A stretch of 64,000 nt of DNA from Macrostomum hystrix (lineage: Eukaryota; Animalia; Platyhelminthes): NCBI GenBank assembly GCA_950097015.1, contig CATNEN010000041.1, forward strand, positions 1,550,001 to 1,614,000. Reading direction: 5' to 3'. The notes beneath the pieces were generated by a model. The model saw only the letters and a program-made list of their open reading frames with translations. It made no database searches and was not told the DNA's origin. This document shows positions 5,960-14,800 of the stretch, in pieces. The translations under genes and the position numbers were made by a program. Position 1 is the stretch's first letter. Each line of letters starts with the position of its first letter.

Positions 5960-8900
5960 TCCCCCAGCTCAGTTGTGACACTGCCAATTTGAATATAATA
6001 ATGCCTGAATATTGAAATGTGCTGCAGCTCTGATTTACTTGAAATTTACCAGGACTCATTATATATATGTAGAGCTCGTGTCCTCAATTCATTTTTATAC
6101 CAACAGTCATATTCCACATTGGAAATAGGAATTTATATTTACTAAAATAATTTAATAAAATAGTAGAATTACCAGTGGCCCTTATCGGCTTATAGAAATT
6201 AAAGCTTCTATCGCTTTAGGATAAGTCGAGGAACAAAGTTTCACAAGTTACTTATTTTTGGCTTATCCCACGCATTGAACAAACAAATTTAATATATATA
6301 TACCAAAGTGTTTCAGATAATGTAAAAAAGGTAATAATTATTAAAATATAAAATACTTGATCATAATATTTTTAACCTTATGCAAATAAATAACTAGCAA
6401 TAATGGTGCGATTTTTTAATTGCTATTTTTTCGAATTCCCAGTTTACGCCACAAATACATCGAGAGGAACGAACACATATACTTGGTTTGCTCCCTTAAA
6501 GTAAAAACTGTGTAAAAGCAGCACTTATTTTAGATAGAAAATATCCTCTCTAAAGTTTATCTTAAAAATAATTTAATCAACATTAAATATGCCATTCAAT
6601 TCAAATGGGCTAAAACGAAATAAATTATGATTTAGCTTATACAGAGTAAGCTTTTGTACAGAAATAACACTAACAGAACAAATAACTTAGTGAAAAATGT
6701 ACAATAAAGGCCAAGGACTATATCAAACAACACAGCACGCTCAACTCAATCTTGGTACAAAATTTTCAAAAGGCTGGCTTAAGCATGCAGCTCTACAGCT
6801 AGCCAATCGTTTCATTGCTATAATTATTTTATACAGCAAAAAAGTTTATCTGACAATGGGGATAGCTAACACTTGAAGGTTATTGAAGTTGCTGTTACTT
6901 GGTCTTCATGTTTGATAGATAAGAAGAGAAGTAATTATGAGTAGGCCTATATAACTTGTGGAAACAAAGTTAATTGTTTCTGGGTAATAGGAGCATTATG
7001 AGTCCCAACAATTGAGATAAATACACAGTGTATATCTATATTATTGTCCAGAGAACAACTAAGACTTACTTAGGCCTATTCACCAGAATGGCTAATAAAA
7101 ATTGCTTGCTTCTGTTACGATATATGTACCTCTTGAAATACAAATCATATTTTATCAAATAATCTATTTGGATTTTTATGTATCTTTAAATTGTTCCTTT
7201 ATATGTATTGTGTAATGCACAACTGAAACACACTGAGCCACTTAACAGGCTCAAGCAGTAAAAAACTTTGTAAGCTATATTCAACAAAGCTAATGTAACT
7301 TAACCATTGTACTTATACCTGTTGATAAAGTTATAGGCCTATCCTGTACCTGGTCCCAATTCTGGTACCTTGTATTTACACATGTTCTTTGATCCATATC
7401 CATATTCAAATGTGGCTTAAGCATGCATCCAAGAAATAGATATGGTTAAAGGATAGCTGCTTAAGCCACCCTTTAAAACAATACACAAAGTTTGAGCATG
7501 TGTGAAGTTGAGCTTGAGTTGATCATATTTTGTTAAAGTCCTTGATTAGCAGATTGACATTATGGGTAGCTCAACTTAATGAATGCCTCTACATGTGTGA
7601 AAAAACTAGTTCTATAGGTGCAAGTGGGTCCCATAAAACATTCTCTGTTCTATGCATATATATTATCTATGGGGCCCTATAGCTACTCCATAGGCCTAAC
7701 TACAGGTATAACAGTTTTTTGTTTAATTAGGACCTACTAATTGAACAACTTAAAAAATATTTTTCTAAGAAAACATCTTTGATTTTTGATGAGTCAATAC
7801 TGTAAATTGTATACAACTTCATTTTCACACTCTTTCCATGGTGTTGGTATAGACTATAGGATCATCACATGCTGGAAATTTTGTGGTTCACTATATCATG
7901 ATAATTATGGTTAGGCAGCACATTAGAGTCCTGCCAGCATATTGGTACATATAATGTTGTTGCTGGAAGCTTATTTGCCAAAGTTTTTCGCACTTATACA
8001 TTATGCATTATCTTGGCCATATTTTATCATGTTATAACCATACCCTACAGTATTTTCTTTATACCTAGATATCAGCTATCTCCTACTGAAACTAATTTCG
8101 GCCATATGCACATCTTTTGTAGCTTACATCAGAACTGAAGCCTGAACTTGAAAAAATATGCTATGTATCTTGTTACTAACATTTCATTACAGCATTACAA
8201 AATATTTGTCCAATTAAACAAAAACTTAAACATTAAATTTGAAACTAGAGTATAATGAGTATGTGATAAGAAAAGGCATTCTAGAGTATAATGAGTATGT
8301 GAAAAGAAAAGGCATTCTAGAGTATAATGAGTATGTGATAAGAAAAGGCATTCTAGAGTATAATGAGTATGTGATAAGAAAAGGCATTCTAGAGTATAAT
8401 GAGTATGTGACAAGAAAATGCATTCTAGAGTATAATGAGTATGTGATAAGAAAAGGCATTCTAGAGTATAATGAGTATGTGACAAGAAAATGCATTCTAG
8501 AGTATAATGAGTATGTGACAAGAAAATGCATTCTAGAGTATAATGAGTATGTGACAAGAAAAGGCATTCACTTTTTGCAAACTTCACCAACTTGTAGGCA
8601 TTGGGGGTACAGATGCTTGCTCTTGTATAGAAAGAAAAGACTTTTCATGTAAATATATATGTATTATGTGTATATGTATGTATATCAGTCAATCATATAT
8701 ATATATATATATTTATTTATTTAGTCATTAAATTATTAGGTCTATATTTTTGACTAAAAGCAAAAACCTAGAAATAAGGGAAAAAAAGTTTTTGCTATTT
8801 TCTGTGGGCAAAAAATTAATTTTAGATGTTTATTCTAGAGTCATGTAGACCTAATTAGCTGATGGAAGATGTATTTTTACATATTTTGATTGAACCATTC

Positions 8901-9283
8901 TGTAGTCCTAGTAAATGCAATCATTCAATATTAGTAACTCAAAACAAATGATCTCATGAGGTAATGAATCTAACTGATATAAAAATTGATGGCTAAGCCT
9001 ATGCCCACCTAGCCAAAGACTAGCTTTTGAATTTCATGTATTTGTTAATTATATTTGCTTCTTGATATCATCCTAGTTTTAAATTATTAATTTAAATTAG
9101 CACAAAATGCAAATCAGGGCATTAAAAATTTGTGTTGAAAATATTTCAAGAAACAAATTGACATTTTTTACTTTCATCATTCATCTATATTCTGTGTTCA
9201 GGTTCTAGATTTACTTTCATCATTCATCTATATTCTGTGTTCAGGTTCTAGATTTACTTTCATCATTCATCTATATTCTGTGT
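5960..9283. other. AT-rich, strongly CpG-depleted island with no intact ORF
   Basis: About five CG dinucleotides by eye between 6720 and 9240, against CpG-rich exons on either side; no non-repeat ORF over 60 aa in the ORF track. Confidence 0.75.
8245..8568. repeat. 36-bp minisatellite, 9 copies
   Basis: Unit ctagagtataatgagtatgtgataagaaaaggcatt. Confidence 0.95.
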
Positions 9284-9368
9284 CATACATGCGCAACCTC
9301 CCAAATTTACACCGGCCGTGCGTTTTTAAAAAAAAATGCGACATACCTATGCCCAAATTTTTTTATCT

Positions 9369-9432
9369 GGGTAAACGGCAGGGGTAACTATGACTGTGTT
9401 GCAATAGTAAAATGCCTCGTCATCTAATTAGT
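9369..9432 (+). pseudogene. 64-bp 28S rRNA fragment (helix 69-71 region) inside the transposon
   Basis: GGGTAAACGGCAGGGGTAACTATGACTGTGTTGCAATAGTAAAATGCCTCGTCATCTAATTAGT versus the conserved eukaryotic 28S GGGTAAACGGCGGGAGTAACTATGACTCTCTTAAGGTAGCCAAATGCCTCGTCATCTAATTAGT (recalled from memory): 54/64 identical, ungapped. Confidence 0.9.
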
Positions 9433-10669
9433 CTTCCGCTGGCAGCAGAGTGCACTCTGGCGACTCGATCGTCGGCGTGAATGAAATTGGTGAGGTCAGC
9501 TGCGTGGCGTCGCCCGTCAAGCTGCTTCCCTGCTTGTCCAATCGGATCTTCCAGGTGGTGCCGGAGACCATAATGCTCAACATCACCATCACCATACTCA
9601 CGAATGTGTCATACTGTACGCCAGAAAAATGGTCTTGTGTGCCAGAAATTCAAATTTCAAATGTACGCCGGGAAGCAAACTGTAGCCCATAAAATGTTTA
9701 TGCACTGTAATAAATCTGATTGCGACTTACCTCCCCCTGAATGTGACTTACTTCCCTCTGAATGCGACTTACTTCCCTCTGATTGCGACTTACTTACCTT
9801 GGAATGCGACTTACTTCCCTCTGATTGCGACTTACTTCCCTCTGAATGCGACTTACTTCCCTCTGATTGCGACTTACTTCCCTCTGATTGCGACTTACTT
9901 ACCTTGGAATGCGACTTACTTCCCTCTGATTGCGACTTACTTCCCTCTGAATGCGACTTACTTCCCTCTGATTGCGACTTACTTCCCTCTGAATGCGACT
10001 TACTTCCCTCTGATTGCGACTTACTTCCCTCTGAATGCGACTTACTTCCCTCTGATTGCGACTTACTTCCCTCTGAATGCGACTTACTTCCCTCTGAATG
10101 CGACTTACTTCCCTCTGATTGCGACTTACTTCCCTCTGAATGCAACTTACTTCCCTCTGATTGCGACTTACTTCCCTCTGAATGCGACTTACTTCCCTCT
10201 GATTGCGACTTACTTCCCTCTGAATGCGACTTACTTCCCTCTGATTGCGACTTACTTCCCTCTGAATGCGACTTACTTCCCTCTGAATGCGACTTACTTC
10301 CCTCTGAATGCGACTTACTTCCCTCTGATTGCGACTTACTTCCCTCTGAATGCGACTTACTTCCCTCTGAATGCGACTTACTTCCCTCTGAATGCGACTT
10401 ACTTCCCTCTGATTGCGACTTACTTCCCTCTGAATGCAACTAAGTTGCCTCTGATTGCAGATTTTGTCACGTTTTTGCTTCTTTCCCCATTTGCTTTCCT
10501 TCCTTTCTTCTTTCCTTTCTCTGCTTTCCTCCTTTTCCTGCCTTCTTTTCTTTTTTTCCGCTCGTTTTTTTCTGTCCGATTTTTTTCTCGGGTGGCCATT
10601 TTTGCGACTTACCTTGCTCGGCCGCTCGTCACCCGGCCGGATCGGCCGGGTCGGCCGGGTGTTGCGCAT
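9428..10669 (-). CDS. Putative spliced 80-aa single-TM peptide encoded inside the transposon
   Basis: Exon 1 10669..10613 (ATG in the TIR, MRNTRPTRPIRPGDERPSK) ends at AAG|GTAAGT. Exon 2 9613..9428 follows tttttctggcgtacag| and reads YDTFVSMVMVMLSIMVSGTTWKIRLD...PAED*. Both junctions are phase 0, and exon 2 has host-like codon usage. Confidence 0.4.
9715..10455. repeat. 21-bp minisatellite (about 35 copies) inside the transposon; carries GTAAGT on the minus strand
   Basis: Unit tgcgacttacttccctctga(a/t). Confidence 0.95.
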
Positions 10670-11838
10670 GTATGTTCTGTGTTCAGGTTCTAGATTTACT
10701 TTCATCATTCATCTATATTCTGTGCTCAGGTTCTAGATTTACTTTCATCATTCATCTATATTCTGTGTTCAGGTTCTAGATTTACTTTCATCATTCATCT
10801 ATATTCTGTGTTCAGGTTCTAGATTTACTTTCATCATTCATCTATATTCTGTGCTCAGGTTCTAGATTTACTTTCATCATTCATCTATATTCTGTGTTCA
10901 GGTTCTAGATTTACTTTCATCATTCATCTATATTCTGTGCTCAGGTTCTAGATTTACTTTCATCATTCATCTATATTCTGTGTTCAGGTTCTTGATTTAC
11001 TTTCATCATTCATCTATATTCTGTGTTCAGGTTCTAGATTTACTTTCATCATTCATCTATATTCTGTGTTCAGGTTCTAGATTTACTTTCATCATTCATC
11101 TATATTCTGTGCTCAGGTTCTAGATTTACTTTCATCATTCATCTATATTCTGTGCTCAGGTTCTAGATTTACTTTCATCATTCATCTATATTCTGTGTTC
11201 AGGTTCTAGATTTACTTTCATCATTCATCTATATTCTGTGTTCAGGTTCTAGATTTACTTTCATCATTCATCTATATTCTGTGTTCAGGTTCTAGATTTA
11301 CTTTCATCATTCATCTATATTCTGTGCTCAGGTTCTAGATTTACTTTCATCATTCATCTATATTCTGTGTTCAGGTTCTAGATTTACTTTCATCATTCAT
11401 CTATATTCTGTGTTCAGGTTCTAGATTTACTTTCATCATTCATCTATATTCTGTGTTCAGGTTCTAGATTTACTTTCATCATTCATCTATATTCTGTGCT
11501 CAGGTTCTAGATTTACTTTCATCATTCATCTATATTCTGTGTTCAGGTTCTAGATTTACTTTCATCATTCATCTATATTCTGTGTTCAGGTTCTAGATTT
11601 ACTTTCATCATTCATCTATATTCTGTGTTCAGGTTCTAGATTTACTTTCATCATTCATCTATATTCTGTGTTCAGGTTCTAGATTTTCTGCGAAAAAATG
11701 TCAAAGTATAAAATCAAAAGAGCCAATTAGATTGCCATAAAATTGTTTTTTACATATTCAGTTTTCCAATGCCATTATTTTTATGTAAACTCCTGTAAGA
11801 GAATAAGAGTTCCCTACCTGCTCCAGGCCTCCCAGTCG

Positions 11839-14800
11839 ATGTTTGTGGTGCTCGTGCACCCCAACCTGAAGCTGTTTGTCCGAGCCCTGAACTCGCTGGC
11901 TCGCCTAGGTGAGGAGCTCTACCTGGAGTTCGACCCGGCGTCTGTGCTGGCGAAGACTGTGAACTCAGGCCGGTCCGCCTACGCCGAGTTCACTTTTAGG
12001 CCAGAGTTCTTCCACCGCCACAGCCTGGCCGAGGCGGCCGACCGGCCTGAGGAGTCGCTGCGTTGCAAGATCCCCGTCAAGGCCTACAGGCAGACCTTCC
12101 GCTCCCTGGGCCACATCGACCGCTCTGTGGAGCGTTGCCGCATCGAGCTGGACGGGCCTGCCAGGCGGCTAACGGTGAGGCCAGCTGATTATCTGTGTCG
12201 CTCAAACTCTTTGGCTTCACATTCTCCACTCCGAAAAGCTTTATGGGCTGACCCCTGAAGCTACCAACCCGAACCCTGAAGCTACCAACCCGAACCCTAA
12301 AGCTACCAACCCGAACCCTAAAGCTACCAACATGAATCCTGAAGAACCCAAACCGAACCCTGAAGCTGCCAACCCGAACCCTGAAGCTACCAACCCGAAA
12401 CCTGAAGCTACCAACATGAATCCTGAAGCTAACAACCCGAACCCTGAAGCTACCAACCCGAACCCTGAAGCTAACAACCCGAAACCTGAAGCTACCAACA
12501 TGAATCCTGAAGCACCCAAACCGAACCCTGAAGCTGCCAACCCGAACCCTGAAGCTACCAACATGAATCCTGAAGCTAACAACCCAAACCCTGAAGCTAC
12601 CAACCCGAACCCTGAAGCTAACAACCCGAACCCTGAAGCTACCAACATGAATCCTGAAGCACCCAAACCGAACCCTGAAGCTAACAACCCGAACCCTGAA
12701 GCTAACAACCCGAACCCTGAAGCTAACAACCCGAACCCTGAAGCTACCAACATGAATCCTGAAGCACCCAAACCGAACCCTGAAGCTGCCAACCCGAACC
12801 CTGAAGCTACCAACCCGAAACCTGAAGCTACCAACATGAATCCTGAAGCTAACAACCCGAACCCTGAAGCTACCAACCCGAACCCTGAAGCTAACAACCC
12901 GAAACCTGAAGCTACCAACATGAATCCTGAAGCACCCAAACCGAACCCTGAAGCTGCCAACCCGAACCCTGAAGCTACCAACCCGAAACCTGAAGCTACC
13001 AACATGAATCCTGAAGCTAACAACCCGAACCCTGAAGCTACCAACCCGAACCCTGAAGCTAACAACCCGAACCCTGAAGCTACCAACCCGAACCCTGAAG
13101 CTACCAACCCGAACCCTGAAGCTACCAACCCGAACCCTGAAGCTACCAACATGAATCCTGAAGCACCCAAACCGAACCCTGAAGCTGCCAACCCGAACCC
13201 TGAAGCTACCAACCCGAAACCTGAAGCTACCAACATGAATCCTGAAGCTAACAACCCGAACCCTGAAGCTACCAACCCGAACCCTGAAGCTACCAACTTG
13301 AATCCTGAAGCACCCAAACCTGAATTCTGATGCTGCCCACCTGATCTTAAAACTATCAATCCAGATCCTAAAGCTATCAATAAATGTTCAGAAGCTATCA
13401 ATCCATGTTCAGAAGCTATCAATAAATGTTCAGAAGCTATCAATCCATGTTCAGAAGCTATCAATCCATGTTCAGAAGCTATCAATCCATGTTCAGAAGC
13501 TATCAATCCATGTTCAGAAGCTATCCATTCATGTTCAGTAGCTATCAATCCATGTTCAGAAGCTATCAATCCATGTTCAGTAGCTATCAATCCATGTTCA
13601 GAAGCTATCCATCCATGTTCAGTAGCCATCAATCCATGTTCAGTAGCTATCAATCCATGTTCAGAAGCTATCTATCCATGTTGGTAGGCAGGTTTTGAAT
13701 TGAATTTGTATATAATTTGAAAACTTGAAGCGGATTTGAAACTGCAGGTGCAGTTCCAGTGCCGCATGGGTATCAGCAAGCTGCATCAGCTGTACGTGCT
13801 GGAGTGCGAGTGCCTGCAGGCCGTAGTCAGCCGTCCTGCTGGCCGCTTCACCCGCCTGTCGATTCGACCGAAACTGTTGGCCGATCTGATTACGCAGAAC
13901 TTCCAGACCTCTCAGGAGGAGCTGACGGTGACCTGCCAGCCTCGCAGCTGCGTCATCTGCAGCTACTGCGACAACGGCGTCCCGGCCGCGGGCTCCGTGC
14001 AGACGACGCTGAGCCTCCGGCCTGAGGAGTTTCACGAGTACCGGCCGGCAGGCTCTCGCGGCGTCACCTTCTGCCAGCGCGAGCTGCGCTGTCTGCTAAT
14101 GTTTGGCGACTGGCAGGTAGGGTCCGGGTGGACTTACGCGCGTTGGAGACACTTTTTATTCAGGAGGGACACATGTTATTCTAGGTCACAGGTCATTCTG
14201 GAGAGACATGGGTCATTTAGGAAGCATACAGGACATTTAAGAGTGACACAGGTCATTCAGGAGGGACACTGGTCATTCAGGAGGGACACAGGTCATTCAG
14301 GAGGGACACAGGTCATTCAGGAGGGACACAGGTCATTCAGGAGGGACACAGGTCATTCAGGAGGGACACTGGTCATTCAGGAGAGACATGGGTCATTTAG
14401 GAAGCATACAGGACATTTAAGAGCCTCCGGCCTGAGGAGTTTCACGAGTACCGGCCGGCAGGCTCTCGCGGCGTCACCTTCTGCCAGCGCGAGCTGCGCT
14501 GTCTGCTAATGTTTGGCGACTGGCAGGTAGGGTCCGGGTGGACTTACGCGCGTTGGAGACACTTTTTATTCAGGAGGGACACATGTTATTCTAGGTCACA
14601 GGTCATTCTGGAGAGACATGGGTCATTTAGGAAGCATACAGGACATTTAAGAGTGACACAGGTCATTCAGGAGGGACACTGGTCATTCAGGAGGGACACA
14701 GGTCATTCAGGAGGGACACAGGTCATTCAGGAGGGACACAGGTCATTCAGGAGGGACACAGGTCATTCAGGAGGGACACTGGTCATTCAGGAGAGACATG

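Follow-up and report, generated by a model that had tools for sequence, protein, structure and literature searches.

A 1391-bp transposable element lies at positions 9284-10674 of the window, the 64,000-nucleotide stretch of Macrostomum hystrix DNA analysed here. Its inverted ends (14 bp) are perfect, it is flanked by a target duplication of 8 bp, and its host site is a 43-bp satellite that extends on both sides (9167-9283 and 10667-11686). The octamer TTCTGTGT is normally single in the satellite period; thus, both the duplication and the original empty site are directly evident. Both the inverted ends and the duplication had been described in the initial annotation, and they are borne out at 9284-9297/10661-10674 and 9276-9283/10675-10682, respectively. 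The element and its borders comprise the following features:

9276..9283, no strand: left target site duplication, 8 bp, TTCTGTGT, an octamer within the 43-bp satellite that is duplicated only at the insertion
9284..9297, plus strand: left terminal inverted repeat, 14 bp, CATACATGCGCAAC (motif search of the window and genome)
9284..9326, plus strand: 5' end common to a ~280-bp MITE family (BLAST of MITE copies against the element; element positions 1-39/43)
9327..9368, plus strand: A/T-run linker, including a single diverged subterminal GCGAC motif
9369..9432, plus strand: 64-nt look-alike of 28S rDNA, from -36 to +28 around the R2 insertion site (alignment to the host 28S)
9396..9409, plus strand: altered core of the look-alike, with 8/14 bases unlike 28S (comparison of copies)
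9433..9440, plus strand: 8-nt junction between the look-alike and the LINE-leader piece
9441..9582, plus strand: LINE-leader piece, ~79-81% identical to about positions 105-250 of the leader of a non-LTR retrotransposon (L061:4553-4695)
9592..9713, plus strand: terminal ~120 nt of another repeat family, the copies of which all start at CCATACTCAC
9715..10458, plus strand: 21-bp minisatellite of 35 units, with the core GCGACTTAC, which is also the core of the MITE subterminal repeat
10459..10660, plus strand: pyrimidine-rich 3' region, the last ~76 nt of which are common to the MITE (BLAST)
10661..10674, minus strand: right terminal inverted repeat, 14 bp
10675..10682, no strand: right target site duplication, 8 bp, TTCTGTGT

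Besides the two ends of the element, the 64-kb window has no match to CATACATGCGCAAC at up to two mismatches. No transposase gene is found inside the element, where the open reading frames are short or generated by the minisatellite; the long frames across 9715..10458 were considered as genes and rejected as artefacts of the repeat. Other tandem arrays lie nearby, including a 36-bp repeat of nine units (8245-8569) and two more 21-bp minisatellites of 50 units (12253-13311) and 16 units (13353-13682), and the neighbourhood of the element is a repeat-rich patch.

The 14-bp end motif has 1125 matches in the 220-Mb genome, compared to three for the reversed control. Most of these motifs are paired at a distance of ~265 bp and delimit a ~280-bp MITE of more than 500 copies, which is without the insert. 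Of 11 short MITE copies inspected, most have an 8-bp duplication, and the end motifs that appear solitary belong to MITEs with one mutated end. The sequence that the window element has in common with the MITE is restricted to the first ~43 and last ~76 nt. The same insert is carried by ~18 copies on 10 contigs, of which nine are complete (1009-1418 bp), with perfect 14-bp ends and nine different 8-bp duplications, and the remainder include forms with internal deletions. The copies diverge from their consensus by ~1.8%. The element is a long derivative of the ~280-bp MITE, in itself of an ordinary kind, and represents a young, mobile and non-autonomous subfamily of cut-and-paste transposons. 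The earlier proposal of a mobile element with cargo is upheld by the nine complete copies, each with a duplication of its own, and the presence of ~18 copies at different loci excludes an assembly artefact.

Among the element copies (L001-L011, positions 15-414), CpG sites diverge from the consensus by 6.1% versus 1.3% elsewhere, which is a strong signal of CpG decay in a flatworm genome. The length of the target duplication (8 bp) fits the hAT or P superfamily. An autonomous hAT or P partner sharing these ends had been envisaged; none was found by pairing of ends on contig C1, where no two perfect ends lie 1.5-10 kb apart, or by a search for P-type transposase domains, which occur at 17 loci, the one on C1 not being near an end motif.

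The extra internal DNA of the element is a patchwork of repeats and not a clean capture of rDNA. The LINE-leader piece (142 nt, 9441-9582) begins 8 nt after the 64-nt look-alike and is in the same orientation, and many genomic copies of this non-LTR retrotransposon share the same starting point. In the related copy L061, a downstream open reading frame matches the reverse transcriptase of LINE-1 ORF2 by PDB sequence search, another piece of open reading frame has no match in the same type of search, and a decayed frame has a weak match to an endonuclease fold only (Pfam). The CCATACTCAC-starting repeat family of which the window holds a part at 9592-9713 (other copies L020, L022, L023 and L028) carries repeated TGTAYGCCRGAAA motifs. 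The first five bases of this family are identical to the start of the MITE end; thus, the two may be related transposon families.

The look-alike at 9369-9432 aligns without gaps to the host 28S, with 54/64 identical positions in all rDNA loci fetched (E = 2.7e-11 in a search of the whole genome), and the similarity ends sharply on both sides. The fetched loci are confirmed as 28S by Rfam and lie in a normal rDNA unit of ~11.74 kb. The mismatches are unevenly spread: the first 27 nt have two, the following 14-nt core, which reads CTCTTAAGGTAGCC in 28S and GTGTTGCAATAGTA in the element, has eight, and the final 23 nt are free of them. The flanks are identical to the host 28S at 48/50 positions. 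Relative to the R2 insertion site, the mismatches fall at -25, -22, -9, -7, -4, -3, -2, -1, +4 and +5. In a post-hoc test with random placement of ten mismatches over 64 positions, a 14-nt span containing eight or more of them arose in 0.06% of trials. The native sequence at the nick (CTCTTAAGG/TAGCC) is absent from the element, and all four bases 5' of the nick are changed. This 28S stretch is also the site of I-PpoI and Pokey. The ungapped match and the cluster of mismatches agree with the initial annotation, as does the comparison with the 28S of the species itself, which has the canonical core and lacks the variant. The Rfam LSU model does not match the 64-nt piece, even at E-values up to 10, and an Rfam scan of 9000-11000 detects no rRNA, only weak snoRNA-like noise in the satellite. 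A 28S gene or pseudogene was rejected on these grounds, as the homology is limited to 64 nt with sharp ends; the piece was rightly regarded as not being functional rRNA.

The left part of the look-alike is present at 18 loci of the element family, and the core with its right neighbour at 17, all with the same variant. The altered core is identical in 14 of the 17 copies that hold it, and the other three have one change in the 24-nt span searched. Elsewhere in the genome, no intermediate between the native and altered core is detected at up to three mismatches. The same altered core in all copies thus points to a single ancestral event before amplification. The look-alike diverges less than the rest of the element copies (0.43% versus 1.95%, p = 0.002), but the difference is not significant when CpG sites are left out (0.45% versus 1.34%, p = 0.07); selective constraint on the unit within the element was therefore rejected, the lower divergence being largely a CpG effect. 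Also rejected was the altered core as the 5' junction of R2-occupied rDNA units, since the left part together with the start of the core is confined to the 18 copies of the element.

The look-alike belongs to a dispersed genomic family, which is the new finding of this analysis. Members of the family are defined by the 28S flanks from -36 to -13 and from +6 to +28 and by a middle that is not native and measures 24 ± 1 or 11-15 nt from one inner anchor to the other, the dispersed loci being known from motif matches alone rather than from their surrounding sequence. The left flank (≤3 mismatches) has 144 matches, corresponding to 18 true 28S copies, 18 element copies and ~108 loci elsewhere. The right flank (≤2 mismatches) has 110, corresponding to 22 true 28S copies, 16 element copies and ~72 loci elsewhere. 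The reversed-sequence controls for both flanks have no match in the genome. By contrast to the flanks, the next 24 nt of 28S are confined to the 22 true 28S copies, and no dispersed copy continues past +28. Upstream, the loci with a perfect left flank stop at -36, with one exception. The ends of the unit are, thus, sharp at -36 and +28, and the dispersal is specific to the R2 target region, the neighbouring 28S sequence not being dispersed. Examples of dispersed units are found at C3:887916-887976, C39:18679490-18679553, C25:1279650-1279793 and C39:8193509-8193990. Some units form small tandem arrays with a period of ~90 nt, as exemplified by six left flanks spaced ~92 nt apart on C39. A poly(A)-type retrocopy, in either orientation, was rejected as the origin of the units, as a T or A run lies beside the unit at two and one loci only.

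A search for the two inner anchors with a free gap between them recovers the native sites, the element copies and the look-alikes of the rDNA spacer (three in each), along with additional loci that have other middles. When the anchors are made stricter, both are present at 23 dispersed loci, which have 23 different middles, with a gap of 24 nt (as in 28S) in ten loci, 23 nt in four, 25 nt in one and 11-15 nt in eight. The variable middle spans about -13 to +5. One-sided flank tests, used to avoid ascertainment bias, give the same picture: none of the 24 dispersed loci found by the right flank (≤1 mismatch) keeps the adjoining TAGCC, and none of the 17 found by the left flank (≤1 mismatch) keeps -12 to -1. 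In many dispersed loci, one of the two flanks alone passes the mismatch thresholds (≤3 on the left, ≤2 on the right). In a hand tally of the ten members of native length plus the element (n = 11), no member has the native base at -9, -7 or -2, and the middles have T for C at +4 in nine cases, T for A at -4 in eight and A for G at -1 in seven.

The window copy conforms to the family in both flanks (two and zero mismatches) and in its 24-nt middle. Like most of the family, this copy has T at +4 and A at -1, and its A at -25 is also found in several members. The derived states at -25, +4 and -1 that are common to the element and the family are the reason for reading the element as having captured a family member, and judged from sequence, the captured member was most likely already altered. 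The clustered alteration stressed by the initial annotation is real, but it appears neither unique to the element nor made in it, as all copies have the one variant and units with a non-native middle are found at over 100 further loci and three times in each rDNA spacer. The shared states of the middle could also reflect descent from a single altered founder, in which case R2 attack would rest on few events.

The look-alikes of the rDNA spacer number three per spacer, belong to the class with a short middle, and have a non-native core. They resemble the element copy in their outer ends (GGGTAAA... to ...TTAGT) and inner edges (after ATGAC and before AAAT) but differ from it in having a middle that is ~12 nt shorter and in being antisense to the rRNA. 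The present spacer look-alikes were rejected as the source of the element unit, as they have shared changes of their own that are missing in the element; thus, in their present forms, neither gave rise to the other. Outside of rDNA, the spacer segment is matched at four places only, and weakly. The spacer also includes an intact U1 snRNA gene (L079:3627-3789, Rfam 151.7 bits).

Insertions at the R2 site are evident from the rDNA. The genome has 22 right halves of the R2 site versus 15 left halves, and in three rDNA units 4.9-5.2 kb of sequence separates the intact upstream 28S from +1 (C17:88447-93604, C42:30053-35238 and C1:23266364-23271281). These insertions are of R2 size and lie exactly at the R2 point, and are regarded as putative R2 elements by position and size; they are not among the best 150 RVT_1 matches listed. 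An rDNA-inserting element at this site had been anticipated by the earlier reading of the window. In the occupied units, -36 to -13 is retained whereas -12 to -1 is lost, which gives them the same left edge as the variable middle of the dispersed family. In other species, the footprint of the R2 protein extends from about 40 bp upstream to 20 bp downstream, and that of its N-terminal domains from -37 to -15 and as far as +20 (PMC11204384). These footprints roughly coincide with the conserved parts of the unit, at -36 to -14 and +6 to +28.

Two further observations concern the rDNA. The two best RVT_1 matches of the genome, C17:39440-40180 and C42:44911-45651 (minus strand), have open frames of 950 amino acids and sit in rDNA units that are ~7.2 kb too long and have an intact R2 site, which suggests a second rDNA-resident retroelement elsewhere in the unit. 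In addition, two right halves of the R2 site, at C17:72120 (-) and C17:76723 (+), are in facing orientation, separated by 4.6 kb, at the point of reversal of the rDNA array.

The element is a non-autonomous MITE derivative that probably captured an altered look-alike of the R2 target along with other repeats and was then amplified, with R2 attack favoured as a possible cause of the lost cores of the family. An ancestor would have picked up an altered family member together with adjoining junk, either by template switching during the repair of an excision gap or, alternatively, by two MITE ends that mobilised the DNA lying between them. The captured form would then have multiplied to ~18 copies, with the altered core inherited rather than made in the element. 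As for the family, R2 may recognise and cut target copies outside of 28S, such that the unoccupied survivors would be those with a deleted or rewritten core. The short class would match the loss of the segment between staggered cuts. A scar of repair or excision, as suggested in the initial annotation, would fit the variable middle from -13 to +5, the class that is ~10 nt shorter and the loss of native sequence from about -12 in the R2-occupied units. By contrast, rewriting that preserves length is unlike ordinary end joining and counts against R2 attack. A broader proposal is tentative and may well be wrong: the more than 100 dispersed copies would be uncleavable R2 targets of the size of the R2 footprint, with cores that were rewritten or deleted by R2 attack or kept as decoys, and DNA transposons would help in their spread.

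Other origins of the look-alike are less compatible with the data. It is unlikely that the element directly captured a piece of functional 28S that then underwent chance clustered mutation in a master copy, with no link to R2 or to the dispersed units. The flanks, which are nearly identical to those of the present 28S (48/50), and the one variant in all copies, for which one event suffices, agree with such a course; however, the same outer ends and inner edges recur in the spacer look-alikes and in over 100 dispersed units, derived states are shared with the dispersed units, and clustering of this degree (8/10 mismatches in 14 nt) is rare in random placements (0.06%). There is a modest chance that the look-alike and LINE piece form a chimeric retrocopy, made by a LINE reverse transcriptase that switched to a discrete 64-nt RNA, and later captured by the element, with the dispersed units arising likewise. 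The 5'-truncated LINE leader that follows the unit after 8 nt in the same orientation, the sharp unit ends at the loci tested and the lack of an adjoining A or T run, as expected with the tail at the far LINE end, are in line with this origin. We know of no source RNA for a 64-nt unit. A copy of 28S rRNA would have the native middle; such an origin would account for the dispersal but not for the altered core, and the best-scoring 5' ends of the LINE family do not adjoin the listed units. The chance of an assembly chimera or of fortuitous similarity is negligible, given ~18 copies of the same structure on 10 contigs, with the complete ones each having their own duplication, and the E-value of the 28S match (2.7e-11 against the whole genome). 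The other copies of the element family carry the fragment with the same clustered variant, the host 28S lacks this variant and a chimera is excluded, such that none of the outcomes named in the initial annotation as refuting it was observed.

The units may instead serve as bipartite sites that bind the R2 protein or some host factor, selected as uncleavable decoys and spread by elements, although this is quite improbable. The conserved parts of the unit roughly match the published R2 footprints (PMC11204384), the two classes of middle (24 ± 1 and 11-15 nt) differ by about one helical turn, and three units reside in every rDNA spacer, all of which would suit a binding function. However, the unit in the element copies shows no significant excess of conservation without CpG sites (p = 0.07), many dispersed loci retain a single flank at the thresholds used, and selection on each of ~100 scattered sites would be weak. 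The decoy function raised in the initial annotation has no direct support. Among these readings, capture of an already altered family member by the MITE derivative, with R2 attack as a possible cause of the core loss, is preferred.

The main interest lies in the dispersed family of R2 targets without a core rather than in the element. R2 serves as a model of site-specific retrotransposition, and its use for gene insertion is under development. To our knowledge, how hosts and R2 handle target copies outside of the normal site is hardly known. A genome whose extra targets, in every case tested, lack precisely the cut region and retain the parts bound by R2 proteins of other species would document, in nature, attack on off-site targets or else mimicry of the target. 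The dispersed units would also be natural variants at hand for assays of binding and cleavage.

Compared to known systems, the element resembles long derivatives of MITEs with captured DNA (e.g., Pack-MULE-like transduplication and the filler of abortive gap repair) in its short inverted ends, fixed-length duplication, lack of a transposase gene, high-copy short form and internal segments copied from elsewhere. The Pack-MULE-like elements carry fragments of host genes, whereas the cargo described here consists of repeats (the rDNA look-alike, LINE leader and transposon end). Similarly to the U6-L1 chimeric retrocopies, a sharp-ended unit of the size of a small RNA lies directly upstream of a 5'-truncated LINE piece; by contrast, the middle of the unit is unlike 28S rRNA and the LINE piece itself ends after 142 nt. 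Pokey of Daphnia is a DNA transposon that is tied to the same 28S site and carries repeats of the rDNA spacer (PMC3849761). Pokey and the M. hystrix element are both DNA transposons with rDNA-derived sequence that are found outside of rDNA. Pokey, however, is a piggyBac transposon that inserts at the TTAA of the site, whereas the element has 8-bp duplications at unrelated sites, none of which was seen in rDNA. With respect to the R2 target of 28S itself, the 64 nt of the element span -36 to +28, which is about the published R2 footprint, but the core at the cut point is replaced (8/14) and the unit resides outside of rDNA and inside a DNA transposon.
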